A stretch of DNA of 64,000 nucleotides, taken from Chlorokybus atmophyticus. Taxonomy: Eukaryota; Plantae; Mesostigma and Chlorokybus algae. Each line of letters starts with the position of its first letter. The stretch's first letter is position 1. The DNA lies in the NCBI GenBank assembly GCA_009103225.1, contig RHPI01000008.1:486015-550014 (forward strand), read 5' to 3'. The position numbers and the translations under genes were made by a program. Positions 1-61,901 of this stretch are shown here, one piece after another. A model generated the notes under the pieces. The model had not been told where the DNA came from. It made no database searches and saw only the letters and a program-made list of their open reading frames with translations.

Positions 1-920
1 ATGTGCACGCTCACGGCACGTCAGCTGGACTGGTGCTGAGGTACGCAGTTCACCATCTCCCTTGATTGTGGAGTGCAATACATCAACTACGATATGGTAC
101 ATAGCGTCTGTCACGTGCAGTTGGCGGACGGACATGGTGGCCATCCCTGAGCCTAGTGAAGCCGCAACAACTTTCTTAGCAGCGGCAGCAGATGAAACTC
201 CGTTTACCACAATGGCAGAGTTGTGCGACACTGCACCAGCCATAACCATCAGCGGCATACTGCATGTGTATGCTGGCAGACACACGCAGGTGAGCCTCGT
301 CACGTGAAGCTGCTACTCCATCCTCCTCTGTTTACTGCTATTCCATCCTCCATGCACTGTGCTTTGCACTGGTGCTGGACTGCAAATCTGTTGGCAGGTG
401 TTGGAAAATGGAGAGGAGATAGGCGCCTTCCTTTTCAGACGAGCGCTTCCGGCAGTTACTCTGGACGTGAACGCAGTGCACATGCTGGTAATGGCATCCT
501 CATGGTTTGGTAGCGCATGGCACACTTCATTGCTCTTGGCTTGGAGAGCTGACTACTATCTTGCTGCACTTGTACCTACAGACTGGCATCTGGCGCAACC
601 GCATCATCACCGCCGACGGCTTTGTTCCATCACCGCTGGTGGAGGCCCTTGTGGCGTGTGGCGCAAAAGCAGTGATTGCACGGACTCATGCGCAGCCGCC
701 AAAGGACTCAACATCTGTTTCGCAAGTCGTGCATGCGGCTGCGGGCGCCAGTGAGTTGACCCCTTCTCCTGGGAAGGATGTTGTGCAATTCTTCACTGCC
801 TTGAACAAGGCGCTGTTCGTGTATGATGAGGATGTCCAGACTGCGTTTGCGGCAGCCATGGATGCAGTGCCAGGTTGCAAACAGTATCGATGTCGTGTAA
901 ATGTTGACTTGAAACAGTAA
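1..920 (+). CDS. PLA1: Patatin-like phospholipase A I, C-terminal exons (5' part outside window)
   Basis: Spliced peptide SWRTDMVAIPEP...LHVYAGRHTQ|VLENGEEIGAFLFRRALP...|TGIWRNRII...CGAKAVI...QYRCRV matches the C-terminus of plant pPLA-I as I recall it (SWRNDVFIVAEP, HRYIGRQT, FMFRRTVP, GAWRDRII, SGAKAVI). GT-AG introns; TAA at 918-920. Confidence 0.85.
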
Positions 921-2721: not shown

Positions 2722-5183
2722 ATGCAGCGCTGCACTGCATTGAGGCGGCAGCCTGGCTGTGGGGGTGTCATCGTTGCTGTCCTCGTTGTCCACGTCGGCG
2801 TCGTCACTGACGTCAGGGGTGGGTCGATTATTGTTCCTCATTGCAGTGCCCCCACCCCCACCCCCCACCCATCTTTAAGGAGAGACAATCACTTGGGCCC
2901 AGGGCTGCGCCCCAATTGGGCTCTGATCTGGCCTCCTCCTGCTTGGGAAGTGTACAACCTGACTTGGTCAAAAACATTCACTGCTTCAAAGTGAGGGGCT
3001 ACATTGCGCTTGGATTGGCAACCCCTTGTACAATTGTGAACAATTCGCATCACTTACATCACCCCACACGCAATGGCGCTGCACCTGGTCTTCACCTCCT
3101 CCCGTCCCAGACTCGCATCAACAACAGCTTCAAGCAAGGGGGTGGTGCAGCAGCAGGACAGGACCAGCAGAGGACTGTTAGGAGTCACAGTATCATCACC
3201 TACACTAAGACCCAGCAGCAGGTCCTGGACCCGGCCTGCGAGGTTTGTACAGCGGAGGACTGGGAGTGTGATAGTGGTGGCCTCGTATACTACGGGTGTG
3301 TCGGAGCATGAGCCCGAGGATGAGAAGATACGTGATGGAGGGAACGCGCCTATAAGGGAGCGTGAGGTATGCGTGTGTGAGGTCTGGCTGGTGGTGAGTT
3401 GTTGCAGCTGAGTGTGTTGTGCACAAAGCCGAGTTTCGTACGTGCTGTTGTTGCACACGACGTCCCAGTGTGTGCGCAGCGTCAGATTAGCACATCACGA
3501 GTCAGACATATTAGCACATATGTGCGCACACGCGCGTGCGCAGGAGCGTGTGCACTCTATCGCTTGCAGACCGGCTGGTGAGCGTGCACGCGTGCGTTTA
3601 TGTGTACACGCGCGCACGCGAAGGGGGGGGAGGGGCATGACAATGAGTTGCACACCAAAGAACACGAACACACCCACATGTGCACACTGAGTGCGTCCTG
3701 AAGTTCAAACCATCCGAGTACGCGCTGCATCTCGCACATCTGTTTGCTGGCATACGACCGACCAATCGACTGTGTATGTATCTGCACGTCAGTTGATCAC
3801 GATGAAGGAAGCTGTGCGGTCAGACTGCGCCAACGCCCGCCGCGCCATCCACAACGTCCGCAAGGTGAAGTACACAATACTCTACATCACGCTTGCTTGT
3901 GGTGGGTTCCGTGCGCGTGGGCGTGGGCGTCAGTGTGGGTGCGCGCATAGGCGCGTGTGCGTGTGGGTGCATGTGTGCGCGTGTGTGCGCATGAGTGTGC
4001 ATTTCTATGCGTGCGTGTACGCTGGTACATGTGTATATGTTGTTCACCATACCAACAACACCTCATCGCCAGGTTGTAGACAGCGTATTCGCCGCCTCAG
4101 ACCCCGACATCTCCGACTCCTTCCAAGACTTAATCTTCCACCGTGCTCGCGACCGCAAGCGTCGAGAGGAGTCGTCATTCACGCGTGACAAGCGACTCTC
4201 CCACCTCAAGCAGTTGGTTATAATGAGTGTGGCGTGGGAGGCGGTGATGTGGGGCCTGCGGTCGATATCCGCGCTGTACAGACGGTGTTGGAGTCTGCGG
4301 CAAGGAGGCGGTGGTGTTTGTGATGTGGATGGTGGTGTGGGGGAGGAAGATGATGTTGATGGACATACCACAAGCCCAGCCAAGATGATGCACCAAGTGC
4401 TGCAGCGCGCGGAGATACGGCGCAGCGTGCTCAACCTCATCCAAGAGTTTGCCATCCAGGTGAGATTCAACCTGTTACTTGAACATGCGCGCGCGCGCAT
4501 GCATATCACACACACTCGCGCACTCGTGCGCACGCTTACGCGCGTGCACATACCTGCATGCACAAGCATAAGCACACACGCAATCGTACATGCGCATACT
4601 CGCAATCGTGTTGGTGGTGCATTGTATGACATGAACAACTTCTTTCTCCCTCCAGGGTGAGGACCACAACACGCGGGCCCGCAACCTGCGCAGACTAGCC
4701 AGCGACATGAGTCAGCTGGCGACGCGCAACAGCAGTTACGCTGCTGCGCCCCGCACGGACCCGTTCCTCGACCTGCTGGGGACAAACAACCTCCTCACAC
4801 CCTCGCTACTACCCGACCCCACCATATGGCGCTACTTTGGCCCAGGTAACAATGTTGTGTTGGTGTCACAGCTTTCGATCACGTCATGTGTGACACACCT
4901 TGTGCACATTCACACATGCACATCCATGCCGAGTCGTGTGCACATACTAAAACTACACTGACACACATACGAGCACGCACACGTGCGCGCGCACACACAC
5001 GCATACACACGCACGCACGCACGCACGCACGCCTGATTACAAACAGTCTGTTACTCAACGTGTGGTTTGTCTCTGTGTTCAGATATTGGCACCGAGTTGG
5101 AGGCGTGCGCCGACGAGTTGATGGTTGTTGCCGTCGAGTTGCAGAACGTGTCGCGGATGCCATCGGACTACTTCGAGTATTGA
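2722..5183 (+). CDS. Uncharacterised multi-exon protein, possibly plastid-targeted
   Basis: Six GT-AG-bounded exons (approx. 2722-2990, 3110-3368, 3792-3865, 4073-4459, 4657-4846, 5083-5183) that read as one continuous protein. S/T/R-rich N-terminal region; TGA at 5181-5183. No family recognised and the start codon is uncertain. Confidence 0.6.
3525..5040. repeat. Alternating purine-pyrimidine low-complexity tracts in introns
   Basis: (gc/gt/ac)n runs at about 3525-3620, 3915-4030, 4485-4600 and 4960-5035; also at 28535-28590. Confidence 0.8.
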
Positions 5184-9998: not shown

Positions 9999-11374
9999 CA
10001 AACAGTACGAGCGCTATACATAAAAATCTGAACAATTCACATTCACTACACCTATTATGATACAAACTCGATGCAATATGTGTATAGTAAAATACGCACC
10101 CATATGGACACTATATATAGATTGAGCTCGTTTACATGCTTTACTTATATATACAATGGTAATTCAGCATTAGTGAACATAAGACCTAAACTTATGTTTA
10201 CATATAATGTAATTGATTTATGCAGCACTTTATGCACCATGTGTTGTATAAGCTTATGTCTAACATTTCGTGGACATGCCAACATCGTTTTGTGTTTGAC
10301 CTTGCCCCATTTGTTGCACTATGCGTGACGAGGGTACACTGTTGGTTGGTGCACACGAAGGGCCATATTCAAAATACGCATCAACACGACATTATGCGAG
10401 TCGTATGATTAAGTGCGACGCATCAACAGCAAAGAGGTGGTGTTGATGTTAGCCTTCAATTAATGCTGTTTACATAGCATGGCCTATGTTGCGGCTATGC
10501 TTGTGGCACATATGATTTCACAATATACCACGAGCTTAGATCAGCTTATGCATGAGCTTAATACGGCATTGCATTGCACTTGCATTCATGTATTGTAAAG
10601 GAGTGCAAATCTGCACTCTTTTACAATATATATAACACATATGTATATGTATTGGGTTCAACAACATTAATAATACGGTGCTGCTTGTATCTGTGGTTAC
10701 ATGTCGCGTAGCATATCACATCTTTAACCCGAAGGCTTGGGTAAGCTTGTATGCTCTGCGTCACATAGGCCCTGGAATGCAAGCAGATACAAGGCAATAA
10801 TGAACATGTGTGTTGTACCACACACATACACTGCACGCAACCACCAAAGCTCAATTCTTTTTCACAATTCAGACGAACGAGCAAGCATGCGGTTGGCAAC
10901 ATCTACTATGCCTTTCAACACTACTCACACACACTACCACACGTACAAACACCTGATACCATTATTCAAAACTCAACATATGCGGGCGTCCGCCTGGACA
11001 CTCACAACATGCCTCCTAGCGCTACGTCCTTCTCCGTCGTCATAGGCTCAGTGTGTAGGGGTCCATAGCTGGGCATTGCATAAGCTCAAGCTATGCTGCT
11101 TGTGCATTTCAGTCCAATGGCATTGCCTTGTCAGTTCAAGTGGGCACTTGCGCGCTTGCTGATTAATATATCCAAGATGGACACCAACATATAAGACTCC
11201 GTAACACATTGGTTTCCAACATGGTTACGTATGCAGTGCTGTATGGTATCCATAACCGCACATGGATGTCATGTGACATCTTAGACCAAGACAAAGTTCA
11301 TCATTAAGGCTTCGTGGTTTGTCAGAATACTCACCTCCGTTAACATAGGTAGAAACACACAACTTGATGCAAGG

Positions 11375-11413
11375 GGCGTGTCGTGCGATCCGGGGGGACA
11401 ACTCGTGGACGGA
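11375..11413 (+). repeat. Left terminal inverted repeat
   Basis: ggcgtgtcgtgcgatccggggggacaactcgtggacgga, preceded by aagg. Confidence 0.92.
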
Positions 11414-14400
11414 GTTGTTCCCATATCATGTGATGTGATAGCAATCTGCAGACAACTAAACCACTTTGCTGGCCGCTTGACATCAGCAATCGCATGCAAT
11501 ACCAGCATGCAAGCAGGCAATCAGCAATGCATGTAGCTTTGTCTCTTGGATGTTGTTGAGTCTCTTTGCAGCTATTGAATGCCTTCAGGAGTGTAAGCCT
11601 CTCTGTTGTTGGCAAAATAACGTCAACTACTATGCATGAAGCTAGTGCCTCTTTGCAGCTACTTGTAGGCTTTCAGGAGTGTAGCTTCACCATTGTTGGC
11701 CAAGTAAAGCCAACCACAATTCATACAGCTAGGCCTACACTGTGATGATAATGAGCATGCACTCATGTGTGTGTTGGCAAAGTTCTGCCAACAGCTGCTT
11801 GTACAAGCAGATCAGAATTTGCACAAAACATTTATCTTTGTAACAAGGTCACAAGGCAGGGTACAAACTACTCCAAGGGTCAAGGCTGTATATACAGGGC
11901 AAATGCCTTTGTATCAGGGCACTATTCCAACCACTACACGCACATCACAACACGTTTTTTTTTTGCGGTGGGGGTACATCTCTTTTACTCCATGAGTTCT
12001 CCCTGGCTAGGTGTCTCCTGGCTGGCCATCACCGCCAAAGGACCAGAACACTTTCTGCAGCCGCGGTAGTCCTTGCATTTGTCACAGCCCCAAACATTCA
12101 GCGCGCCCTCAGTCTTACCAGCCTTGCGAACCTTGTTCACCCAGCTTTGCTTCAGCTTGTTGTCCTTGTTGGCCTCAACCCAATGATCTGGGCACCGGGC
12201 GTTGCTGCCATCCTTAGTCCCCGAGTAGGCTGTGAAGCAGAGATGATGTAAGCGGCGGAGACAGCCTTCACTGCGACACACCGTTGGGGTCGGATCGTCA
12301 AAACTGATTGGCATGTCGCAAAGCAGACTGGCGCAGTGCGGATGTGTGTCTGCCACTGGCACTTGCACTGGCTGTGGCGCTGGCTTCTCTGGCGTCGCCT
12401 GCGACACCGGCTCTGCATCTTTTTGGGTTGTTATCTCAACGTTGTGCGCAGGTTCTCTAGCTTTGTCGCTGGCTCCCTGATCATCTGTGATGAGCGAAAC
12501 CACCCGCGATGCCGAGTCTGGGTTGACATCCAGCTGAGTGAGCTTCCCTGCTAGCGGATCTGGAGTCGACTGCAATTCCGCTTCAAGCTTTAGGTAATTC
12601 GCACCGATAATATATACGCCCCTCACTTCGGTAAACTTGTCCACTGCGCACATGATCAAGTTAGCGAACATATGTGTGCTACAAACATACACAACACACT
12701 GCGCTTACTGCTTTGGATGTCAGCGCGGCGTTTATCACAGTAGTCCCTGATGTCCTTCAGCGTGTCTTCCTCGTCTTTTAAGATTGCAGCTGTGCCTGGT
12801 TGAGCAACCCAGCGCAGAAGAAACGCCATGTGCTTGACATCGCCGAAGTTCATGCTAGGAAAAAATTTTAGCAGGCGATCTTGCACGACCTCGTCCTTGC
12901 TCTTGATCCATGGCAGGGCAGCGGCTTTATCTTTAGCAGCAGCTGAGCGCAGTGAGCTATGCTTCTCTTGCTGCAACAAAAGGTGTTGCAGTAAAGTGAG
13001 TGATTTAAGTACCTCCAGATAGCATGACGCTGTTGGCAAAATTATACCAACACTCAGTGGCTTACGTAGTGCTTGAGTTCGCTGCAGTAGCCGTAGAAGC
13101 GGTCCTCGAGCTGGCACATGCTGGTGGAATCGTTGTCTACTGCAAAAATGCTATAGCCCAACTTGAGTGCATCGTCGCTCAGACCACCAGCTCCAGCACC
13201 GAGGTCGAGAACCCATATTTCGCTGTTGCTTTTTCTAGCGGGTAGAAAATTTCCGGCCAGGGTGCTGCACAGTCGTTGTTGCCAGCAGATAGGTGGATGA
13301 CCTTCAACACTGAAGAACTTGCTGAGCCACCAGCGCTTCACAGCTCCTGTGGCTGCCTTTATCATGCCTTCTGAAAAGTCAATCTCAGAGGGTGTTGCAG
13401 CAACGACAGCCAACAATTCATCTTCAGTTTCGCCCTCATTCATCTCGTTATCTTCCTCTGCTCCGTGTGAAGAAGACTTCAGCTCCTCCACGTTTGGCGA
13501 CTCTTCCTCGTATGGTCCCAGCTGGCAGAACTTAGGATGCGAGGGATCATGCCAGACAAAGTCATCCTGCTCGCGCAGCTTGAACCAGGTCTTGAGATTG
13601 GTGACCTTTAGAGAGTCGTCGACTTGCTTGTAAAGTGCAATGAGGACTGGCTCAGTCCGGTCTTGGCTCTTGTATAAGCCAGGGAACACTTGCAGCTCTG
13701 CGCAACATAACAGTTTTCAGTACTGTCGCTGTAATACCGAAAGGCAGTAACTGCACAGACACAACTTACTTGTAGCGGCGTGCGTATATGTAGTAAACTC
13801 GACGATATATGCATCGGAGTTTTGCAGGATTCCCTTGACCGCACTCACGTGATGCAAAGGTACAAAGGCTACAAGCGTCCACCACTTCAGTTCGCTGTTT
13901 TGGCGGCACAGTGCATCAGTTATTTCCTGGAAGTCTTCGATGGTGAAGGCCTTGTCGCGGTCATCGTTCTCTTGGAAAGGAACATCAAAGAAGACAAGCA
14001 ACAAGAGTACCCTTCCTTCCGACGGGAAGGAAGGGTACTCCTTGACTTGCAGCTCTCGAACAAATTTTTGCACAATTTGAAAGCGCGGTACGCATCTCTG
14101 TTTGACCGCATGGAACTCCTGGGGGCGATCGCCACTAGCGTGCACAGGAAAACGCCTGCGTAACAAGCATAGAGATATAGTATGGCTGCATTAAGCACCT
14201 GTTGGTAAAATTTGGACAACACAGCTCCATACTTACAAGGGCATAACCACGGCGCCGGGGACGTCGCCGACCTGATGGGGCTCTGGAAGCGGTATCTTGC
14301 CAAGCTGGCAGACTTTGTCCATGATGGCGAATGGGATATTCAGATGCTTGACTGAGTGCTTCGACTCTAAATCAGCTTTGACGCTTGTGAGCTGCTTGAA

Positions 14401-16822
14401 GATGAGGTTATGACCTCCCTTGAGAAGGACCTCAAACAGCTGGTTTCTGGCTGCATACAACTCTGGCGCCTGATCCGCTAAACGACTTTCACACCTGATG
14501 ACAGTGATGACTCTGTTGATACTGGTTACTGCTATACATACCTGCAATGAACAGACATAACTTTGCATGTGCTAGCTTACCCAGATGTTCCAAAGACCTC
14601 GCCTGGTATCACTTTACATGCCAAAAAAGACACAAAGCGTCCTTTGCGTTGCACATTTAGGTGGTAAGGCTTGAACTCACGATGCACGCTGACATCGATG
14701 GTGCCAGCTTCGATGTCATCCAACACCTTCATGATCTGCTCTCCTGATAGATGAGTGAACAGCTCCAAGGTGTGACGAGGCAATGGCTTGTTGATGTCAT
14801 CAACATCATCAAGGACTTGAAAAAAGCGTTCGTACTGCTCCTCAGTCAGTGGCAGTTTGACCGCCAGCCTGCATAGGTTGATGACGATGGCGAGAACAAC
14901 ACAACATTCTGCAGAGTCATAATGTACGCAAACAAAACTTACGCGATTTCAGTTCTATATTCTCTCGAAATCAGTTAGTTTCTGCCTTTCCACTTAATTT
15001 CATTGTCCATGAGCAAGGCCAGATCCAACAAGCAAGCCTTCCAGCCAGCTGAATACTTGTCTGAGCCTGGCCCAACTACTGGCTTGGCGGGTTTTCCGCG
15101 CGTGAAGTACTTGTCACGAAATGTGTCCACCTTGGTCAGAAATGTGGATGGCTTTTTGTGGTCATCTTGCTCGTTGTGCTGTCTAGCGTACAGATGGGCC
15201 TGCTCGTCGGTTAGCCCGGACACTACCTGTGCAGGGAACGAGATTCAGCTTGCTTTTTTTCGTTCAATTTTTGCAATGCAACAAGTGCTATAAGCTAGCA
15301 TACCTCACACCACTCAAACTGTAGCCAGTCATTATTTGGCTGCTCCTTGGCTAGCTTGGACGCGACGATGAACGAATGATTGCCGCCGAGCACCTCATAG
15401 GTGAAGTCTTTTGCGCGGTCGATGTGGTATTTATTGAAATACTCCTCCTTGACAGGCATCTCTCGTCCTTTGTCATTTCTGTAAGCCAGCAGAAGCCATG
15501 GCTTGTGCCCTTTATTGTAGCCGCTCCTCATAGCCTGTTCCAGATAGACCAGCCTGGATTTTTCAATTTTGCGCGCTTGATGTGCCCCCTCTGCTGGACG
15601 CATTCTTGACAGGCTGATTTTGTACGTATGTGTATCGACATTGGAGAACAGGTGCGGCAGTATAATGGGTGGCAGAGCATCGCCTGCACAGTCGGTAAAG
15701 TTTTGTCAACTTGTACATGCAGTGAGGCATTGTGTTCTGAAGACACTGCGTACCTGCTGCACCCTCCGTGTCTGCAGGGATGACCAGTTTAGTCTTTGGT
15801 GCTTTGCCCTTGCCTCTTTTGTTTGGCGACGGCAGCTGAGAGGGATCAGCACTCAAGTTGAGCGTCTTTGCTGTCATTGCTGCAGCAATTGATAAATCGT
15901 CAGGATGTTTTGGAGCGGGGTTTGGTGGGAAGTACAGCACATAGTGAACGTACCTTGCAGAGACTCATACAGATTGACAAGCGATGGTGGATTATTAGCC
16001 TTGATGACGTCCTTGATCATCATGTCGGAAAGATCCTTGCCGTTCTCTAGACTGACCAGCTTTTTCCCGGTGGGTGTCCAATGGGCTTTATTTACCGGCA
16101 AATCAAACAGGAAGGTCTTGCGATCGGTAAGAAACTCGTCATCTGGGTCTGGCACGCTCGATGGGATGACAAGCACTCGGACTTCCTTTGGTGAGAAAGA
16201 CCATGCATATATGAGACGATACTCGGACTGGTGATCGTTCTGCAACAAACAAGGAATTGATCAACTATCTTTGAGAATAGTAAACAACCAGCGTTAACAG
16301 ACGACATGACTGACCTCTTTTGTGACTGTCAGATAGTAACGCACAGTCTTCTGCTTATCTTTGATCTCAGTTTTTTCTTTTGCAGCCTCCCACTTGGCGA
16401 GATTGTGTATTTTTTAAGCAGCTCCTTTGAACAGCTCGCGTAGATCTTCAAGCTCTTCGAACTTCTTCCAGAAGGAGCCATGCCTGACATGGATCGTGTT
16501 CCCTGCAGTTACATGTATTGTTACTAAAAGTTCTGCTACAACTATAGCAGGAAGTCCGTCAACAAAGTTACAGTGGTAGTCTCCTTTGTCCAGAGCTTTG
16601 TCTTCGTCGTTAAGCTCGTCATATTGATCTGACTCATCGCCAGAGTCAAGATCGGGATTGCTCTGTTTGTCGTCCGTCTCAGGTACACTGTCATCGTCGT
16701 TATCGTTATCGGAGACTTCTCTTTGAGGGGCTCGCAACTTATCTTTGAGGGGATCACTGCATTAGCAAGAAGTATAGAACAATTGTTTCAGTAAGTAATT
16801 TTGGCAGCAAAGCCTGAGACCA

Positions 16823-16990
16823 GTTGGCAAAATTTGGCCAACACGCAAGAGCAGGCAGACTAACAGCCCTGCTAGCTGCTCTTGCTCGTTGGCAAAATTT
16901 GGCCAACATGCAAGAGCAGGAAAACCAACAGCTATATGCTGGTTGCTTTTGCTTGTTGGCAAAATTTGGCCAACACGCAAGAGCAGGCAG
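16823..16990. repeat. Three tandem 65-67-bp units in intron 2 of the cargo gene
   Basis: Core gttggcaaaatttggccaacaYgcaagagcagg at 16823, 16888 and 16955; the intervening sequences resemble each other. Confidence 0.9.
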
Positions 16991-17374
16991 ATCAACAGCC
17001 CTGATGGCGGCTCCATTAGAGAACAGCGAGCCCCTCTCGATATAAGAATATTCTGTACACAGCGCTGGCCTTGATACGGTAGATTCTTTTAACAAGTTTG
17101 TAGACCAGCGGTAGCCCAGCAGCAATGCAGCCAGCAGCAATGCAACTGATCAGCATACTTACAAAAAGCCAGCCCGCTTCTTCTTTGCCTCCTTGGCACG
17201 GCTGCTGCTGGCCTCCGCTTTGCGTTTGATGCCGCTCGCCCTTGTGTTTCTGCAGAGCCACAAAATGTTAGTGATTGTCTACTTCAGCTGCAACAACCAT
17301 TAACAACGCGAAAGCATAGTGCAATGCATGAAGACCCCAACACTAACTCGTGCACACAGTCAACTGTTGCACAC

Positions 17375-17805
17375 ATGTTGCGGAATTGCCAGCAGCACCG
17401 CGTGTCCATGCTGTGATGTTGGCAATTCGGCTGCACCACATGCACCAGCAGCTGTATGCAGCTCTGTCTAGCAAAACATATGCGTGCTGCGTGCTTGCGA
17501 CAACATGTACAAAGCATACACCAATCTGAATTTGTCAAGTTGTCAAGCAGCAGCGAACAGGCATGTTGTTAGCAGCAACATGCATGTCCGTGCTGCTGGC
17601 AACTCTGCTGCAATTAATACAACAAGTTGTGAGCAGCAGTGAACAGCAGAAGGGTTCAATTACAAACCAATTACAAACCCAGGCATTGCTACTTGACAAC
17701 TCTGCTGCATTGAACAAGTTGTCAAGCAGCAACGGACATGCATGTTGCCGCAGAATTGCCAGCAGCACGGACATGCATGTTTGTGCTGCTGGCAACTCTG
17801 CTAGA
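17375..17805. repeat. Fold-back repeat cluster in intron 1 of the cargo gene
   Basis: Module gcagaattgccagcagcac(gg)acatgcatgt occurs in both orientations; 19-bp-stem hairpin with one mismatch at 17750-17801. Confidence 0.75.
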
Positions 17806-18099
17806 AGACGTTAGTAGTAGCTGATGCTTTGGAACAGTTGTGCATAGCAACTTCTGCTGTCTAAAGCTGCAACAGCTAACAACCAAGCTGCTACGCAACA
17901 AAGCTAAAAAGCTTAACAACTCACCTTATTGTCGTCGTTTCCTCGGTGGCTTGACTGGCCTCCTTCTGGCTGTCCTTCGCAGCTTTTCGCTTGGGTCGCC
18001 CCATCATTGCTCACCGCCCGCACCTCGCCCCCGTCGCCCACGCCGCCGTCGCCGTCGCCCACGCCGCCGTCGCCGCCGCTGTCACCGACCACAGCACCG

Positions 18100-18640
18100 T
18101 ATTTCTGATGCAATGAAGAGTCTATTTCTCATTTCATGTTATATTAACATCATTTGCACAAGCTGCATGTGACATACCAGGGTGCTACGTAATGACCTTC
18201 GCCAAATACCCCCAAACTTTTGTTCGTAATAACAATTGCATCGGTTGATTATTCTGCATGAGTTTTTTTGCAACGTGCTCCAGCTGCAATAAAGACTTTA
18301 TGTGCCAAGTGTTATGTTAATTGGAACTCATGTGCAAGAGTTTTATATCCTACCCTACGGGTGTTACGCGCAAGCCAAAATTGGGTGCCTACTTGTGTGG
18401 TGCCCAAGTTGCGTGAGGCAGGCATGCAAAGTTGCAAACGTGTGCTGTGAGCTGAGCAATGCATGTGTACTAGTGCGTGTTGCTGCCAGAGGTGTTGAGC
18501 CTTGGGTTGATGGTGTGGGAGGGGTAGCTTGGCATACACGGTGTGCAACAGCGAGTTGGGGAGTGGGGAGGAACCCTAAGCATGCTACCAGCAGCTTCGG
18601 AGCTAGCTGAGCTTCTGCTTGCATGCTAGCTTACTCTGCG
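18100..18640. promoter_or_regulatory. Probable bidirectional promoter of the transposon
   Basis: Lies between the divergent cargo and transposase genes. GC-rich ggcggc/ggcgac leader-like tracts point outward on both sides (18020-18090 on -, 18645-18700 on +). Confidence 0.4.
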
Positions 18641-19811
18641 ACTACGGCGACGGCGGGCGTGGCGGCGGGGGCGGCGGCGAGGGCGGCGGGTCAGCTGGGT
18701 CGTCTTTGCCAGGCTAGAGTAGTGCGTTTCTCCTTTGCTTAGTCACAATGTAGGCGGTGGCGCCACAATGCTGGCTGCTGGCTAGGCGGTTGAGAGAGCT
18801 GGCGCTGGGCTGGTGAGAACTGCATGGATCAGGTGCGTTTTATGCTGCATGAAGGCAGGTCCAGCTGTGTGTGAGAGCTGGTGAGCAACGTGAATGCTAG
18901 CATCCACATACGAACCATATGTCAAGATGTTCAGCTGCTGTACACGTCCGCTGCTTGTGCAGTCATATTATGCTGCTGCGCTTAGGCAGGTCCAGGCAGG
19001 TCCGCTGTTTGTTTGTTGCCAATTGAAAGCAAGGTAGGTGTGAGGTAGGCATGTGTTTTTGCTATGTGTGTGTAGGCTTTGTTGAACGCAATTGCAAGTG
19101 GTGCCGCTACATGCAGTGCTGTAGTGACGCATTGCTGTGTGCGCAGTTGTTGCGTCTACATTTGTGATTTCGAAGGGTGCGACAACAAGCAGCGGAGTAT
19201 GCTATCGTTCAACAACGGCCGCATGGCGGCTGGCTATGGTGCATAGTCAAAGCCAGAGGTATGGCACCACCAGTCTCTTGCACTGTGCATTGCATGCTGT
19301 CTGTGTCCATATATGCGCTAGAAGGTTTCAAAGTTGGCAAAATGGGTCATAACGCATGCTGCAAACAAGGGTTGTGCCATATGTTCTGTGCACGTCAGCG
19401 TCATCAAAGTTGGCAAAATTTACCAACTAGCGTTTTGGCCTACTGGCAAATGTACTAACTTCGCGGACTTGAGCTTAAGGCTTTGATAGAGCGTGCCGCA
19501 AGATGGTGACCCCGTCTTGTTTGGAGTCGATAGCATGGCATAGCCTTTGTTGTTGTTGGATAAACTTTGCCAACAACTGCGATGATACCTGCATCAGCGC
19601 ACAATACAACATCTCCTCTTGCCCGCACTGCCCGTGTTGTTGGATGAATCTAGCCTCAAGTTAGGTCAGCTATTTTGGCGGTCAAACCAGCACAGCCTGT
19701 GTTGTTGGTAAAGTTTTGCCATCTCCTGGCAGGTCCGCGAATAATGGGTCCCAGTCTCAACGCGGACAACAAAGAGCAAAGGAATACCGGGTCAAGCAGT
19801 CAGTTGCCGCC

Positions 19812-22607
19812 ATGCAGGAGGTACTAGAACAGACCTGTCAAGGAGATGACACCATCAAAGCAGACATTCTGAGATCCCTGCTGAAAGCACCCAAGAATGC
19901 AGCAGCCGTCGCTCAAGATAGCTATTTGGAAGTCGTCAAAAGAGCTCCTGCCTACAGAACGATATCCAACATGTTCAAGTCGGCATACAACAGCATCAAC
20001 AGCTCCCGCTCCAATGCGCATAGAACGGCAAGGAATGTTCTGATGAAAGCGGCAAGATCAGCAATTGGCGACAACAGGTCGGTGCGAATTTCGGAGGTTG
20101 CTTCAGTGCTCAAGATACGTCGTCAAAGGTTTTATCAAGAAGTAACGTACCTGCACGACTGGAGCACTCGAGGGCGTCGTGCACGCAAAGACAAGGTGAC
20201 ACCGCAGATATGTCAACAGATCGAGGACTTTTGGATCCTCAACACCAGAGAGTCTGCATGCAAGCGTGATAAGATGTTGTTGCGTATGTCCACTGGTAAA
20301 CGATTAGCTAGCGAGTATGTCACCAAGCATTCTTTAGAAGGCACGACACAAACGGCACTGTACTTGAAGTTCCGAGCTGAGAACCCACTTATCGACGTGC
20401 ATCAACGAGTTTTTAAGAAGGTCAAGCCATACTATGTAGGAGGACGCGACGTTCGGCATGTGTGCGTATGTTCGCAGCATACTGAGATGAAAGAGCTTGT
20501 GATGGCTTTGTCTCAGTTCCGGCAGAGAAAGCACGCGCATTGTAAATGCCCATGCGATGCGTGTCAGGTATGAATGTTACGGTAAGAGCTTGTGTAAATC
20601 AAAGCTATGCATCTGGTAACAGCCGTGCATGTAGGTCAAAAAAGACTGCACTTGCCGACACCGCTGCAGATGTCAACTTTACACCAAGTGCCGTTTGCTG
20701 GACTCACCACTGTCGGGTTCATCGGTCACCGGCCTGCTTGACTGTACTTCTTGCACTAAGGAAACGGACAGCACTTACTACAACCACCTCTGCATCACTG
20801 GAGACTGCCCTCACTGCGGATGGATTAAGTTCCCGACATGTCCATTAGAGCGATCAGAAAAGCATCAGTTGCTACAGCCTAGGCTCTACGTAAAGCGCAT
20901 GCAGCCAGGCAAAGCGGAGAACGGTGAAGCCACCGAGTACGCAAGAGTAGACTTTCTCAAGCAGCCCATGACCTTTGTTGACTTTATCAGCCGCCTGCAG
21001 AAGCAGCTGAAGGACTTCAAGCTCCATTCGTTCTTGTCGCAGTGGCAAGCGGAGCAGCAAAGGCAGTGCTTACAGACCTTCTGTCAAGGCACGATCGTCA
21101 GCATCAGTGATTTCTCCGAAAATTACGCTTTGAAGCCAAACAACGAGCTCATGCAGCAGCATTTTGCAAACCGCTCCGTGGTGATCTTGGTGCAACTCAT
21201 CTACCGTCACGCTGAAGAGCATGTAGATGGTGAGACATCGACAGACGACCAGCCGATGCGCGTCAAAGAGGTACGCTCATAAGCCTGCTTGTTGGCATGG
21301 TTTTACCAACAGATCAACACGATCATCAGCGGCTTACCGGGTTTTACATTGCAGGTTCATTTTTGGATATCGGATGATCTTCAAAAAGACTCCTTCTTTG
21401 TTCACCATTGCTTGAAACGGCTTCTCAGAGACTACAGAGAGAGAGGGATAGACATGCAAAAGGTCATCAGCTGGAGTGACAACTGTGCAGTCCAGTATAA
21501 GTGTGCCAACCATTTTGCGCAAGTTGCTCAATACAGCGCTCCGGCAGCTTATATGACATCCATACATACAGAAGCAAACGAGTTGAACACCGTTCATATG
21601 GAATGGCATTATCCTTGCCCGCAACATGGCAAGGGTGAACATGGCGGTCAAGGAGGGACACTGAAACGGCACCTGGATAGGGCCAGCGAGCAAAGTGCTG
21701 AAATAGTGGATGCTGCAACTATAATTCAGTACGCGCAACAGGTGCTTAGCCGAGGAGCCGAGTCATCATACGCAGCCCGTGAAGAGCAAGACAAAGCTCA
21801 GAAGCGGTTTGTGCATCTTGTTGAGCTCCATGAAGTAGATCATGACAAGACAGGGCGCTCCTATCGCTCAGTACCAGGCACTCAACAATTTCAATGCATA
21901 AAAGGAACCGGAGAAGTTGAACGATTTATCTCGCGAAGGTTTTCATGCTTCTGCAGCAGCTGCCTAGACGAAGATTACAGCCATTGCCTGAACAAGTCTC
22001 ACGTTCCTAGATGGCTACGACAAAAGCTGATTGCAAGCGAGGAAGACGGAGAAGAGATTGAGCAAGATGTGAGTGCTAGGCTTATGCGTTGGGTTGAGCA
22101 TTGTTATCTAACTTGTGCTATGTGCAGTTGCTATACTTAAACCAGGAGGCGCTGGCGCTTTCCTTGAGCGTCGGAGACACATTTGTGGTGGCTGCGGATA
22201 AGAGCTCCGATGAATATGAGGCCTCTGCACCTTATTGGGTTTTGCAATTGACTAAACAAGTCGCCACGAGTAAATCCACGGCTATGCGGCCCGACGCTTA
22301 TGGAGTCATCATACCTGCAGACACACTATACGTCACAGGAGTCTACTTCCGCAGAGTTGATGACTCGATTGTGACAGCGGCAGAATATCCCAGGAGGTAC
22401 CTATGTTTCCTACCGCCTCAGCCACAAAAGCCTGCCAGATTATCGGTTAGCCTGTTGAGGTGCGTAGCACGTTTTCCGATGGAACGAGAGAGCCGAAAGC
22501 AGAAGCAAGAGAGATTCAACTCGTCCAGAATGACATGGAAAAAGATCAAGGAGTCTGTCTTTGTAATTCCCGACAAGTATCATGAGATGATTTTAGATGT
22601 GCTGTAA
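19812..22607 (+). CDS. Sola2-type DDD transposase, about 861 aa, third catalytic Asp apparently mutated to Gly
   Basis: Exons 19812-20567, 20635-21270, 21355-22068, 22128-22607 join in frame. Motifs: CVCSQH, Cys-rich cluster, SDFSENY, SDDLQKD, WSDNCAVQYK, HGKGEHGGQGGTLKR, RRFSCFCSSC. Two extra 5' exons (18824-18832, 19176-19258, joining at about 19732) are possible. Confidence 0.85.
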
Positions 22608-23043
22608 TAGCTTACATGATCACACACAGTGTCAAAAGCACAGTCGAACAGTTGACTAGATTTGTGTGTTTGTTCATTGTGACCTCCACACTGTTGGCTC
22701 ATCGTGGCCAACTACGGCAGCAAGTGCATGTTGCCACTTCCGCGTAAGACATGCCTTTCAAGACATATGAGGCATGATGTTGGCAAAACTTATACAACAT
22801 CACTACTCACACAACCCTCCTTGAACATAAGAAATTGCACCCTTTATGTGCATTAGTTGGCAAGATAATTCCAACTTCACGATTCACACAACCCTTGTTA
22901 GACACGTGCAATTGTAACCTTTATGTGCAGCAGTTGGCAAAGTTTCTGCAACATGTTTGCGCAACTGTTGTCAAACGTTTTCCAACAAGGTGGTACCTGT
23001 TGTCTCAAGAATCAAGAATAACATGCGATGTGTCAACAACATT

Positions 23044-23082
23044 TCCGTCCACGAGTTGTCCCCCCGGATCGTGCGACACGCC
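23044..23082 (-). repeat. Right terminal inverted repeat
   Basis: tccgtccacgagttgtccccccggatcgtgcgacacgcc, followed by aagg. Confidence 0.92.
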
Positions 23083-24780
23083 AAGGCTGTAACTAGTAGT
23101 CAATCTCACTACACGAGCATGCTTGACGCCAAGATTGTATGCACGCATTGCTGTCTACACCCAAACATCCGACCAAATTATCACAGTAGCTGGTAGGTAG
23201 CAGGCGCATGCCCCTACCTTTGTGCAGGTAATCTGGCACATCAATCCTAATTGCCACTGCCTACTTGCACGCACTTAGGTAGCAGCCCCCTAAATGTAGC
23301 TAGCTAGCTGTGTGCTGCGTGTTGTGGTGTGTTATTGCCTTCATTGTTGTTGCCTTGCTGCTGGTTGACATTATTGCCTCTGGCCTCTGTGCTATACCCT
23401 ATGCCTTAGCCCGGTGGTCAAGTTAGTGAGTGGTTGTTGTGGTTGTGCATTGCATACGGTATAGCAAAGGGGCCAATACTATGATACACTAGTATGCAAC
23501 ATCGTCACACCAAGCTACGTACTGTCATCCCTGCCTATTACTGCACAAGCATACTCACACGCATGCCAGCGGCCAATAGTGTAGCACACAGCAACAAGCC
23601 AGCATAACATCGATAAACACCAAGCAACCAGCGAACTAGCTTAACATAGCTACGGGGGCTGGACCTATGTGCTCAGCAAGGCTTACAATGCCAACCAACA
23701 AATTGAACGGAGAAGCAGCAGCAGCAGCGCAGCGCATTTACCTACACAGCACGGGGGAGACAAGCAGAGGGAGAAGGAGAGAAGTCAGCCCTTGACCTAC
23801 ACCAGTGTAGACAGGACCGACGTGCTCGACCAGGCCCCAGCCGCCACAGTGCGCCACTATGGTTTCTTATACCCTCCTGCTGTAAGGAGTCACAATACGG
23901 CTGTTGGCATTGCCGGTGCCAATGTATTCGTGGCGAGCAGAGCATGTCACAGCCATATGCATACATCACACAACTCACAACAGCCAGCGAACGAGACCTA
24001 ATACATGTGGGCATGTGAAGCTGTATGCTCCCCACCGTTTACACGTTGTGCGTGATTACAGCAGTTGCAATACAATGATACCAATGCCTGCATGTATCAT
24101 CAAATACATAACCTGGTCGTGTCCACATGACCGAGCGTAATCTTGATTGTAGTGGCCTGCGCTGGTACCTCATGGCTTGCATGTCAAGCAACAAGGAATG
24201 ACCTCAGTCGCGAAATCGTGCATGTGGACGCAGATTTGCATGTACGAATTCCGCCTTGCATGTTTTGCACACCACATCACACAACGCAATGCAGCCGTCT
24301 CCGCAAAGCGGACATCTATGCGAGGGCTGCGTCCGCTTCTGTGGTCGGGGGGCCGATAGTTGATGGCAATATCATGGAAGAGACATACCCGAACAACAAA
24401 CATACTAAGCAACACAGCCGCGCTGCAGCTTTTTGCATGGAACTACTAGATGTTTGATTAGACAATAATGCACACTAGCTTGTAAGAACAGCATCTGCAC
24501 TGCCTGTCACACTATCAACCACGACCACCAACTGCAGCCCTTGACATACAAATCTCTAAAATAGCACAGTATGCGTCTCTATACTGCACCTGTGCAAGCT
24601 AACACGCCAACTGGAACCTTCGCTTTCAATGTGTTAGCAACTGCATGGAAAATGCCTGGTGACATGGTATAAATGAGCACTACGCTATGCATGATACTAA
24701 CCCCTTAGTCAGAATCTATGCACAGGTGATTTGTACAAGAAGGAGCCCTATCCTTCATGGTTTTATATAAGCCGCTCTCA

Positions 24781-26975
24781 TCAGGCCGTAGAAAAGAGTC
24801 CATCACCTGATCATTGCATGTCATGTAATGTCAGTTGGCATACACATAGTTGTGTGCGCTCACCTGCGCATGCTAACCCACCAAACAGAAGCGATCGAAT
24901 CATAAGAGCATACCTGCTTCTTCCTTGGGTTGTGGCGTGGGCGAGTTTTTCCTTGACAGGTTATGAATGACAGCAGAAGAAAATACCGAGTTGGGAACAA
25001 ACACAGGGACGTTGTCGTCCTTAATTATGCGCGTGTGATATATGCCAATGTTTTCAACAACTCCGCAAAGGGACCCGTTATTGATTTCAATCCTGTCACA
25101 AGGAATCATGACACTAATCAATCGCTGTGTTACGCAATTATGCATGTACACAAGCATGCATGGGCGTAAAGGTTTCCGCACGCGCGCACTAAAATGCACA
25201 TGCGCATCTCTGAGCACGGGTGTGACACGCAAACGCCTGCACACGCACACGCAAAAGCTGTACCTTTCGCTCTCGAGGAAAGGTCTGGTGATGAGCATCA
25301 TCAGTCCGGAGACCAGGTTGGACACAACGCTCTGCGAGGCGAGGCCGATGGCCAGGCCGCCCACGCCGCCAAATGCGAGGAGGGCACGCGTCTCGACGCC
25401 GAGCAAATCCATTGCCACGAGCGTCGAAATGACATATGTGGTATATGTCCCCAGCTTCAATAGCAGCCGCCGCGTTGATTGCTGCGTTATAAACTGCGAG
25501 TGACCGCCCAACGCCGCCTGCACATGACCACAAAACCAAGTCACGCTCTCTGTCGCTCTGCCAGTGTTGAAGCAAGTACACGTTGTGTTGATCATCTCTC
25601 ACCTTTTGCACGCGTATGCTTATCCATGCGAAGCATGCCACAGCGGCAACTTGGCAGGCTTTGACTGTGACTGCTTGCAGTTGCAATGCCTGCAAGCAAG
25701 TGCATAAGTGGCATTGTTGTTAGCACCGGCATGGCAAGCAACACAATGACTTACAACTGTTACCTCTGCTCGGTCGGCCCACGGCAACATGTGCACGACG
25801 TGCTCCCCGAGGATGTTTATGCCCTTCACCGCGCCCACGACCCACACCAACACCGAAAGCGGCACCCTCAAAGCCTCTGCCAATGCCATATGCGTATGTC
25901 AGCAGAGAAGCTCAGTTTGAACTTGCATGCAGAATGCGTTTCATCACAAAACTCGTGTCGTTCTGTGCAATCAAAGACCCAACATGCGTGCGTACCAACA
26001 AAGTCGTCCACGCCACCGGGTTTGCCGTCCTCGAGCCTTCGAGCGATGGTGTCGAGGACGCGCTCGGTGAGAATCGCAAAGAGCCCCGCCACCACGACCT
26101 CCAGCGCCATACTCGCCAGCGGGATAGCCCACGCCAACTCGGGGTACTGTAACTTACACTCAGTAAGTTGGTGACCGTGACGGTGATGGTGGTCGAAGAT
26201 TATATGTGCGCATGCACATGTGCATATACACATGGGCATACACGCTTGCATGCGCGTGTATGCAAAGTCTTCAAGCACACGCAGATGGGTGGGTATGAAT
26301 GCAAGTGTAGCAGGTGCATTGTTTTACGCGAGGCAGCCCTGTGAGGGTGGCGGTGTTGTTTTACTGTCTGTCTTGCACGTCAGTACGCCAGCTGTCACAT
26401 ACAACCGTGTGGTTGCACAACCAGGCTGTTTGCAACAGTCCACATGCATGTTAGAGGGTTCAATAGTGCTGCAGGGTTTTCTGACGCACAGAACCATGGG
26501 TGACCAACATGAAGCTAAGTGTACTGCGCGGGTGCATGAACATCCCGTGCCGAACATGCACGCTCAACTTGTGAAGACTTGAACTGTTGTCTTGCTGCTG
26601 CAAGCTGCACCATCCGAACCGACAAGCACATGCAAAGCAGGGAGGACACTGCCACTGCCGGAAGCTCACCTTGCGCATGAAGTCAGCCACGGGTCTATAC
26701 AAGATCCCCGGCGTGAAGCTGCCCGCAGCCGCCACCTGCGCAATGCAACCCGAGGCGGAGGCGGAGGCGGAGGCAGAAAAGGAGGGTGAGGCGACAGGCT
26801 GCCTCCGCCGCCTGAAGGCGCTGCTGCTGTTGCTTCCGAGCCATTCCTGCCGCAGCACCAGCTTCCCACGCTCAGCAGCCGTACACGGCGGCAAGAACCG
26901 ACTGCCTGAACGTGACAGACTGCATGAACCAGGCGACGGTAAGGACACCGCCGCCGCCGCCAACGACACCGCCAT
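24781..26975 (-). CDS. MSL: MscS-like mechanosensitive ion channel with organellar transit peptide
   Basis: Ser/Arg-rich N-terminus, several TM exons, and MscS core LLAFGGVGGLAIGLASQSVVSNLVSGLMMLITRPF...GVVENIGIYHTRI..VFVPNSVF..IHNLSR. Last exon GDGLFSTA* with TGA at 24781-24783. Confidence 0.85.
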
Positions 26976-27561: not shown

Positions 27562-29903
27562 ATGGGTGCATGGCTCAAACACTCTGCCAGCAGGCGCAGG
27601 ATGAGCAGCAAGATGCACCGGACAGCCACGTCCGCCTTAACGACATCATGGCTGCTGTTGCTGTGTCTCGCCACCTCCATCTCAGCCACACCACTCTCCT
27701 CCACCCTCTCCTCCTCTCCCTCCTCCTTGTCGGCTTGCAAGGCGTTGCAAGCTACGCTAGCTGAGCCATCCGACCTTCAGTGCGATCGCGACCCCCCCGC
27801 GCCGTGCATGCTGATGGGCGCCATGCATGACAACGCGTCGGTGCACGACTACGCGCGGTGCAGAGTGACGCCTGAAGTCAGAGACTGGTGGTGAGTGTTG
27901 GGGGGTGACTCTGTCTATCACATCATATGGGTGTCGCATCGTTTAGTGTGAGACTGCTTGATGCAGTAATACGAGACCCAAGTGTCGGTGTAGCCATACT
28001 CGATCAGCATGAGTCGGTGCAGCTGCATCTGCCAAGGGTATGGCTGTGGGTGTGGGTGGGAGGGTGGGTATAAGGGTGGGAGAACTTGATTTGGATGAGG
28101 AGCCGGTGCATGCAGGGGTGGGTGCGTTGCGCTTGCTGTCTTCCATGCAGCATTAGATACTTTGTTGTGGTCGCACAGCACATGCAAGCTGCCAGAAAGT
28201 CCATGCAACCCGCTGATATCCAACATGCAATCACATGAACCTACCTACCCTCTAGACCCACGCTTGAAGTAGGCGAGTGCTGGCGGTGAGGACGACAATG
28301 TAGGCAGCATCCGCTGCGCTCAGTGTGATTCAGTGTGTGGTGGGATGTGATGACGTGTGTGCGTGCGGTGGTGGCGTGCCGTGGGAGCACAGTGACATGA
28401 TGGTGCGGTGTGTGGTAGCGAGCAACCAAGGCAGCATCATATCAATGTACATGTGCTTTTGTAGTACAGTCCTCTAAACCCATATGCCTGCGCCAAAGCA
28501 CAAGATACTGCCTGTCCTTAAGTGCTCACTGTATGTGTGCACACGCGCGCGCGCATGCGTGCACGCGTGTGTGTGCGCGTGCGTGTTTTGCACCTCATCG
28601 CTTACTACTGCACTCTGCATGGTGAGTCCCTAGGCCTGTGAGGGATTCGCATGTGACCGAGGAGGATGATGCTGTTGGAGATCGCGTGGGTGCAATGAAG
28701 CGAGTAGCTGCGCTCGTCGGAAATCACACTGTTGTATTTGTTGGCGACAGCATTTCATATCAGGTAAACATGTCGAGCAGTGAGCATGACGCATTGAAAA
28801 TATTTGCGCGTGCAATCTGCATCGTCACGGATGTGCAGAACTATTACTCGCTAATGTGCGGGCTCGCGCGTGCCGGAGACATGGCATACCCCAGCCAGCT
28901 GACAGATGCAGCTCGAAAGGCAAAGACCTTGGTTTATGAAGCTGGTGCAGCATTTGCTCAGGTGACACCTATGAGCCTTGCCTGCAAGTTCATGGAAACG
29001 ATTCTTGCATAGCTGATATATGACAGGTTTGTGTTGAACATGCAGTTGCAAGTGTCAGCACAGTATGGCACTATTTTCCTGTTTGGGCGGGAGTCAGTGT
29101 ATGACAAGGAGAAGATGGCCAAGTACATGGCGCTTGCGGACGTGTTGGTTGTGAACTTTGGGCTGCACTACAACGAGAATCGTGCGAGGGAGTTCTACGA
29201 TGCGGTGGCCTCCCTCAAGGAACAGCTGTTGGACTTCGTGCTCGGCGGGAACGGCACAAAGGTGGCAATAGTGAGGGAGGTGAGCGCGCAGCACTTCCCG
29301 CACTCAGGCACTTACAACGCCTCGGACACGTCTCACCAGGCCACCGGCTGCACGTGCGAGCGCATGCGGGAAGACATAGCTTTTAACAACCATGTCACGC
29401 GCCAGAATGAGGCCCTCAGGAGTATGGTTGCCAACATAAAAAACCCTCGCCTACAGCTGCTGCCCTTCTACAATCTCACCAATGCTGGCCACGATATGCA
29501 CGTGCAGGACTGCAGCAAAGACCGCATCGCCGACGGGGGTGGCTGCTGCGACTGTACGCACTACTGCTACACGCCAGAGTTCTGGGACTTGGTTGCCGCG
29601 GAGCTGTACAGCAAGCTTGCATCCGCACTGAGTGTTGGGAATGTCACTAGCAAAGCTGCTGAGGCACCTGCTGAGTTATCAACAAGAGGGGTATCAACAC
29701 CGGGAGCCGAGACACCTGCTGAGATGATGTCATCGTTGCCTGCTGCTCAGGCACCTGCTGAGGTATTACCACCAGCTCAGGCTCTGCTTAGGGCAGAGTC
29801 CCCGGCTGATGGTTTAAAGAAGGTTGTGGACCACTTTGAGGAGCGGCGGCGGGCTGCAAGGTCGAGGCTTTACGCTAGCGGATTCTTTCATACCAAGTCG
29901 TAG
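27562..29903 (+). CDS. TBL/PC-esterase (SGNH-like) polysaccharide O-acyltransferase-like protein
   Basis: N-terminal hydrophobic anchor (SWLLLLCLATSISA), VVFVGDS motif, VVNFGLHY and terminal DCTHYC (DxxH). Internal exons at 27900-28400 are not fully resolved. Confidence 0.75.
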
Positions 29904-61700: not shown

Positions 61701-61901
61701 ACAAGTGGCGATGGTGAGGATGTTGAGATGCGATTCGCGGACGACAGCCGCGCGGTTGAGCTGTTGATACGGCAGGCTCAGGCAGCGTTTCCGGACGGGA
61801 AAGTGAGCGCAGCACGCGACTACCTCCGCATTCCTGTGCCCCGCTATGATCATGGAACTGCCGAACAGCAGCCTGTGACCACGAATAAGTTTGACATCTA
61901 G
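58768..61901 (+). CDS. rnz: Bacterial-type short tRNase Z with N-terminal SAP-like motif
   Basis: [35 protein letters not shown] (HxHxDH), exosite [44 protein letters not shown]; upstream exon [20 protein letters not shown]. The 5' exons are uncertain. Confidence 0.9.

Follow-up and report, generated by a model that had tools for sequence, protein, structure and literature searches.

The 64-kb window analysed here (positions 486,015 to 550,014 of contig RHPI01000008.1, forward strand, in the Chlorokybus atmophyticus assembly GCA_009103225.1) carries a complete 11.7-kb DNA transposon at 11375-23082, which is bounded by terminal inverted repeats (TIRs) and holds a transposase gene on the plus strand and a large cargo gene on the minus strand. 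The predicted product of the cargo gene, which is the subject of this analysis, combines a probable ParB/Srx-like segment, an S-adenosylmethionine (SAM)-binding methyltransferase core of the classical kind and a plausible zinc finger. All coordinates are positions in the window, and the features on which the argument draws are as follows.

11375-11419, plus strand: left TIR, starting GGCG; 45 nt, 91% complementary to the right TIR in an inverted-repeat search
23038-23082, minus strand: right TIR; 45 nt, 91% complementary to the left TIR
19716-22607, plus strand: Sola2-type transposase gene in four open reading frame (ORF) pieces, with motifs DFSENY, SDNCAVQYK and HGKGEHGGQGG; divergent from the cargo gene
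11985-18007, minus strand: cargo gene of 13 exons, from minus-strand reading and scripted exon joining
Exons 1-7, minus strand: 18007-17925, 17249-17163, 16756-16315, 16239-15954, 15879-15754, 15683-15304, 15226-14943
Exons 8-13, minus strand: 14868-14581, 14494-14237, 14155-13770, 13697-13066, 12970-12709, 12643-11985
17163-18007, minus strand: basic N-terminus in exons 1-2, with PKRKAAK and KRKAEASSSRAKEAKKKR, from the translation
14943-15683, minus strand: probable ParB/Srx-like segment in exons 6-7, with QARKIEK.., YEVLGGNH and LTDEQAHLYARQHN; no Arg at the GxxR position
13770-14155, minus strand: alpha/beta-patterned segment in exon 10, with FFDVPF (13986-13975); no match in any library
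13366-13602, minus strand: acidic linker of 79 amino acids (21 D/E, 5 K/R), after the DVPF segment and ahead of the SAM-binding core
13066-13356, minus strand: SAM-binding half of a class I methyltransferase in the C-terminal part of exon 11, with a GHPP helix, VLDLGAGAGG and FAVDND
12560-12970, minus strand: candidate rest of a classical methyltransferase fold in exon 12 and the start of exon 13, with LLKFFPSMNF.., LLRWVAQPGTAAIL and VRGVYIIGANYLKLE; by eye
11988-12200, minus strand: plausible C4HC2H cross-brace finger (PHD/RING-like), then a C-x2-C-x5-C-x2-C knuckle
11608-22986, no strand: 20-bp palindrome GTTGGCAAAATTTTGCCAAC in 17 copies (five or fewer mismatches), subterminal, intronic and intergenic

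Direct reading of the flanks revealed a target-site duplication, AAGG, at both ends of the element (11371-11374 and 23083-23086). The transposase motifs DFSENY, SDNCAVQYK and HGKGEHGGQGG pair with the blocks DFIEKF, DGCAKQYK and HFKGSHDGIGA of Sola2-1_Ec32, in a comparison that was made by eye against the sequence printed in the paper supplement, without statistical alignment. Additionally, the GGCG.. termini resemble the GGCGG termini of the Sola2-1_Ec32 family. The transposase ORFs had no matching model in Pfam. Based on the TIRs, the 4-bp duplication and the Sola2 motifs, the element is accepted as a Sola2-type DNA transposon, and the placement of an intron-rich cargo gene in a Sola element by an earlier first-pass annotation of this DNA was borne out. 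No other copy of the cargo gene was found within the window.

The cargo gene reads from an ATG at 18007 to a stop at 11987-11985, with an exon total of 4173 nt (1390 codons), every exon phase-consistent and all 12 introns of the form GT..CAG. The first-pass annotation had also described a phase-consistent gene, and this description stands, with its count of 14 exons and about 1367 codons revised to 13 and 1390. The motifs that it quoted lie where it placed them: GGNH of YEVLGGNH at 15387-15376, DVPF at 13986-13975 and WVLDLGAGAGG..AVDND some 232 amino acids later. The total of 1390 codons follows from the strong exon-7 donor GC/GTAAGT at 14943, and an alternative, weak exon-7 donor would give 1373. 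The basic stretch in exons 1-2 looks like a nuclear localisation signal. Only two internal stops were found in the cargo reading, compared with about 64 expected for a random reading of 4.2 kb. One is an in-frame TAA at 16416-16414; the other, a TAA at 14977-14975, applies if exon 7 extends to the donor at 14943.

A second copy of the cargo gene was found in contigs of the public run X1. This copy carries three additional nucleotides at 14974-14975 (AAC TAT CAG CTG), so that the TAA there becomes TAT CAG and the reading is open. The window copy is thus broken by two premature stops, and the other copy is open at one of the two. The X1 copy also lacks 24 nt of exon 10, with the frame preserved, and its sole 1-nt indel is intronic; this distribution of indels supports the exon model. 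The X1 contigs cover introns and intron edges and contain no splice joints, so that the run looks like DNA and the exon structure is a predicted one.

Exon 10 contains a further feature of its own. A 36-nt palindrome with a perfect stem, GAGTACCCTTCCTTCC CGTC GGAAGGAAGGGTACTC, lies in its coding sequence (EYPSFPSEGRVL) at 13990-14030 on the minus strand, just upstream of FFDVPF. The 24 nt missing from the X1 copy belong to this palindrome, and the frame is kept. The palindrome resembles the footprint of an insertion or excision of the hairpin type within the exon.

The class of the methyltransferase was assessed with two profiles. The classical profile was built from eight E. coli class I enzymes (RsmA, UbiG, UbiE, CmoA, CmoB, BioC, TehB and PrmA), and the beta-class profile from YhdJ, eleven phage N6_N4 methyltransferases and phage-type ParB-methyltransferases. 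In hhalign, 50-60 residues of the core aligned to the classical profile with scores of 52-54 (P 2e-9 to 9e-8); over 61 columns the probability was 94.4%, with P 8.9e-8 and z=21.6 relative to shuffled sequences. Pairwise matches to PrmA, TehB and UbiG were found at P<=0.01. Pfam Methyltransf_25 matched the core with E=0.005 and 17.9 bits, under its cut-off of 27 bits, and weak matches were also observed to Erm and PrmA (NCBIfam) and at motif I (PADLOC). The class I features seen in the core are the GxGxG SAM loop and the acidic end of strand 2, and HPP precedes motif I as HPTT does in PrmA.

The two profiles were calibrated with true cores, each scored leave-one-out against its own profile. True beta-class cores scored 69-148 with the beta-class profile and 13-42 with the classical one; true classical cores scored 10-50 and 24-74, respectively; and the cargo-gene core scored 19.3 and 52.5. 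By these scores the core resembles CmoB or BioC and none of the beta-class members. As in PrmA, UbiG, TehB and CmoB (Methyltransf_25/11), the series of helix, GxGxG loop, helix, acidic strand-2 end and helix B matched significantly; unlike in these enzymes, the second half of the fold went undetected, and the context of ParB-like segment, finger and transposon has no parallel among them. Altogether, these profile comparisons solidly point to a class I SAM methyltransferase.

The first-pass annotation had assigned this region to the beta class of N6-adenine/N4-cytosine amino-methyltransferases, with DVPF as motif IV ahead of motif I. Its SAM-binding core was confirmed by the results above, and its beta-class type was not. 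A circularly permuted beta-class enzyme (N6_N4, PF01555-like) that writes N6-methyladenine (6mA) or N4-methylcytosine (4mC) on element DNA would have motif IV (DVPF) and strands 4-7 in exon 10 and motifs X-I-II in exon 11. Collinear hhalign pairings are consistent with this layout (DVPF with DPPY, TEPVLIAL with yEpIL, GHPP with HPTqKP, VLDLGAGAGG with VLDPFaGSGTT and AVDND with GiEid), as are the occurrence of the D-hydrophobic-P-aromatic variant DLPY in true phage members, a PADLOC MTase_II match at the C-terminal motif I position (E=0.03) and the ParB + N6_N4 fusions that are common in phages and reported in Ectocarpus Sola1. However, the alignment of the spliced exons 10-12 to the beta-class profile was not significant (z of about 2 above shuffles, P 0.03-0.1), and neither HMMER (own hidden Markov model and phmmer) nor BLAST on the spliced region gave a beta-class match. 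PF01555 was unmatched on any exon in Pfam at E<=10 and in every other profile library searched. FFDVPF was aligned to DPPY with a local P of about 0.1, and shuffling of the DVPF half left the score unchanged, so that this half adds nothing over shuffles; as estimated from amino-acid frequencies, a protein of this size would contain about 0.2 D/N/S-hydrophobic-P-aromatic tetrapeptides by chance alone. Additionally, the 79-residue acidic linker lies where the DNA-recognition domain would be expected, which is an odd location for one, and the core score of 19 falls far below the 69-148 of true members. We consider the beta-class explanation improbable, and assignment as a PF01555-type DNA amino-methyltransferase is not supported.

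No (D/N)PP(Y/F) motif occurs downstream of the core. Given this and the classical character of the core, a protein (histone), RNA or other target would be no less probable than DNA 6mA/4mC. The closest matches are methyltransferases that act on RNA, proteins or small molecules, an outcome that the first-pass annotation had itself named in advance as counting against a DNA enzyme. The expected chemistry is corrected accordingly, from a bacterial-type 6mA/4mC writer to an enzyme not recognisable as one, and searches for DNA base modification alone could miss the real target. Two other approaches to this region were set aside. An ungapped block test of motif order with position-specific scoring matrices placed only three of seven core blocks (eight scanned) as expected and was dropped as evidence. 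For exon 10 as a PD-(D/E)xK or Cas2-like domain, the only match was to Cas2 in PADLOC (E=0.011), which is too weak.

In exons 6-7, the ParB boxes can be followed by eye in the order QAR.., YEVLGGNH.., LTDEQAHLYARQHN. The exon-6 segment gave a score of 0.94 in an ESM Atlas feature search, with 182 of 256 features in common with DUF3723 clusters, and a score of 0.90 to clusters carrying ParB_N and DUF6551; these feature matches are to be read as a lead only for a ParB-like assignment. In structure, the DUF3723 model has the ParB_N, DndB and DUF1015 families as its neighbours. No match to exons 6-7 was obtained in hhalign with a WO-type profile of 108 phage-type ParB-methyltransferase proteins. 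The segment is taken as probably, but not provenly, ParB/Srx-like and of the DUF3723-like kind.

The C-terminal finger follows the pattern C-x4-C-x13-C-x4-C-x4-H-x2-C-x14-C-x2-H (codons 1275-1325), with x4 spacing in its first pair. In Pfam its matches to zf-RING-like (E=0.0065) and to PHD_NSD (E=0.18) fell under the cut-off, and a PDB search with the finger returned no PHD. A cross-brace zinc finger is plausible on this pattern. The Cys/His arrangement that the first-pass annotation had described as PHD-like was confirmed in the sequence.

All 17 copies of the 20-bp palindrome lie inside the element and none elsewhere in the 64 kb, compared with 0-1 copies in each of 20 shuffles. None overlaps a cargo-gene exon. 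Seven are subterminal, with a spacing of about 77-87 bp, and the other ten are located in cargo-gene introns and in the intergenic region between the two divergent genes. Intron 2 (16805-16999) has the densest array of the whole element, with three tandem units of 63-67 bp that each carry one near-perfect 20-bp copy. The confinement of the palindromes to non-coding parts of the element suggests that they could serve in self-tethering. A separate set of repeats occupies intron 1 (17526-17787); it consists of 43-nt units, ..AGCAGCACGGACATGCATGTT.., in direct and inverted (91%) orientation, and is distinct from the 20-bp palindrome.

ParB-bearing modifier genes in giant transposons of algae have been described before, in 2025 and by annotation only, so that the concept itself is already published. 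Accessory genes with ParB and a DNA methyltransferase are known from Sola1 of Ectocarpus and from transposons of red and green algae. The first-pass annotation knew of no such architecture in a Sola element; an accessory gene with ParB and an N4C/N6A methyltransferase has been described in Sola1-1_Ec32 of Ectocarpus (Dinatale, Craig et al., Genome Biol 2025, PMC12477816). Like that element, as compared by its published description, the present one is a large Sola-type transposon with an accessory gene on the strand opposite the transposase. The two differ in that Sola1-1_Ec32 is a Sola1 element of 21.5 kb with a 282-bp TIR, whereas the present element is Sola2-like, 11.7 kb long, with a 45-bp TIR and GGCG termini. 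Its gene also has a classical-type SAM core without a PF01555 match in place of the N4C/N6A type, and an extra Cys/His finger.

Further precedent is provided by PAG2 and PAG3 of red-algal Plavaka, Zisupton and Mutator elements (Petroll et al. 2025, bioRxiv 10.1101/2025.02.11.637652). These too are transposon accessory proteins that join a ParB-like N-terminus and an enzyme modifying nucleic acid or chromatin, with inverted-repeat arrays beside the ParB-bearing gene. However, PAG3 (ParB + 2-oxoglutarate oxygenase) and PAG2 (N6A methylase + SET) are separate proteins, whereas the present gene has its ParB-like segment and methyltransferase in one chain, and its palindromes are scattered over introns and the ends of the element, unlike the red-algal arrays. 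Phages and prophages, such as Wolbachia phage WO, carry ParB + N6_N4 methyltransferase fusions (survey PMC12704722) that share the order of a ParB-like N-terminus followed by a methyltransferase and the tie to mobile DNA; they are about 410 amino acids long with strong PF02195 and PF01555 matches, DPPY and FxGSGTT, whereas the present protein matches neither profile. DUF3723, finally, occurs as a conserved cargo gene in the Starship elements of fungi. Its clusters are the nearest to the exon-6 segment in language-model features, and it likewise travels as cargo of giant eukaryotic transposons. Pfam DUF3723 does not match the present protein, however; Starships are mobilised by a tyrosine recombinase, and no methyltransferase is known in DUF3723 proteins.

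In view of these likenesses, the gene appears to belong to the ParB-bearing modifier genes of giant DNA transposons, with its ParB-like part resting on the Atlas lead. It shares with them an accessory position on a DNA transposon, the pairing of a ParB-like domain with a modifying enzyme and the repeated inverted repeats in the element. It would be a variant in three ways, namely in its host superfamily, in the added finger and, above all, in the classical methyltransferase core.

The explanation that we favour, and to which we give about an even chance, is that of an accessory cargo gene of a recently inserted Sola2-type transposon, encoding a nuclear protein of about 1390 amino acids that combines ParB-like, class I methyltransferase and finger parts and takes part in self-tethering. 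The predicted domain order is a basic N-terminus, an acidic region, the ParB/Srx-like module, the alpha/beta segment, the acidic linker, the class I methyltransferase, the Cys/His finger and the zinc knuckle. The ParB-like module and the adjoining helical part may tether the protein to the 17 element-specific palindromes, at which the methyltransferase would then modify its target and the finger would add a contact with chromatin. In this way the element could place a mark on its own chromatin, or control its expression or transposition. We infer self-tethering to the palindromes as the most economical mechanism, and the precedent of ParB-bearing modifier genes with inverted-repeat arrays alongside was counted in favour of this explanation. 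A bolder form, which we put forward tentatively as a rather unlikely one, is a self-addressing transposon whose ParB-like/helical module reads its own palindromes, recruits the classical methyltransferase and a histone- or DNA-reading finger, and writes a mark on histones or other proteins, or an unusual one on DNA, as opposed to bacterial-type 6mA/4mC; element families would then pair different palindromes with co-diverged modules.

Several observations weigh against the favoured explanation. Searches of large protein collections, metagenomes, viral contigs, phages and plasmids recovered no homologue of any exon. Nothing came from a word-indexed search with exon 10, from scans of metagenome and viral loci, from tblastn of phage and plasmid sequences or from exact-product look-ups, and phmmer with exon 11 against 1.84 billion protein representatives gave one match, which was spurious (the peptide TWFKLREQDDFVWHDPSH, at about 13560-13590, is similar to a repeat, W-T-K..EQDD-L-I-W-H, in GBS Bsp-like wall proteins of bacteria). 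The ParB profile PF02195 was unmatched by exons 6-7 in Pfam, NCBIfam, PADLOC and PHROGs, and the GxxR arginine of the nucleotide-binding P motif is absent, the sequence reading GGNHS (15387-15373). This arginine is needed for nucleotide binding by ParB (PMC12704722), so that no CTP clamp of the ParB kind is predicted. The ParB/Srx-like call of the first-pass annotation thus retains the Atlas lead in its favour and has both the profile libraries and this residue against it. AlphaFold2 single-sequence models of the ParB-like exon and of the finger (predicted local distance difference test scores of 34 and 44, respectively) were too poor for a fold search. Detection of the methyltransferase fold stops at its first half, and the score gains nothing from either flank; the 123 amino acids downstream have the right size and resemble '..LkPGG..' by eye, with z=-0.6 and neither score changed by shuffling. 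Between the window and X1 copies, 3 synonymous, 12 non-synonymous and 1 intronic substitutions were counted, a roughly neutral ratio that gives no sign of purifying selection. Among public runs, no RNA run was found, and the locus was present in X1 only. Lastly, the palindromes could be transposase-binding sites instead.

This last alternative, in which the palindromes are Sola2 transposase sites unrelated to the cargo protein and the cargo function is independent of element DNA, seems to us unlikely. Subterminal spaced repeats are typical of transposase-binding sites in many TIR elements, and the seven subterminal copies with their spacing agree with such a role. The ten copies in the cargo introns and the intergenic region weigh against it, and red-algal elements have their inverted-repeat arrays beside the ParB-bearing gene. 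It is also conceivable, although quite improbable in our estimation, that the gene family is decaying baggage whose methyltransferase is a dead or truncated SAM-binding remnant that serves at most as a scaffold. The two stops of the window copy, the neutral ratio between copies, the half-detectable fold and the lack of homologues outside this genome in the searched collections would all be in line with decay. Against it, the 13 exons are still in phase with canonical splice sites, and the exonic indels of the X1 copy are in frame.

Outside the element, the window contains several further features. Just to the right of the transposon, a host ORF on the minus strand (24900-25595) carries MscS mechanosensitive-channel domains (Pfam, E 2e-11). 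The host ORF at 60888-61901 has a Lactamase_B_2 match in Pfam, and that at 29031-29903 a weak, sub-threshold PC-Esterase match (Pfam). GC/AC-rich simple repeats (GCGCGCACACACGCA..) at 4985-5030 and 28537-28582 form a weak inverted repeat with arms 23.5 kb apart, which is probably a chance low-complexity match.

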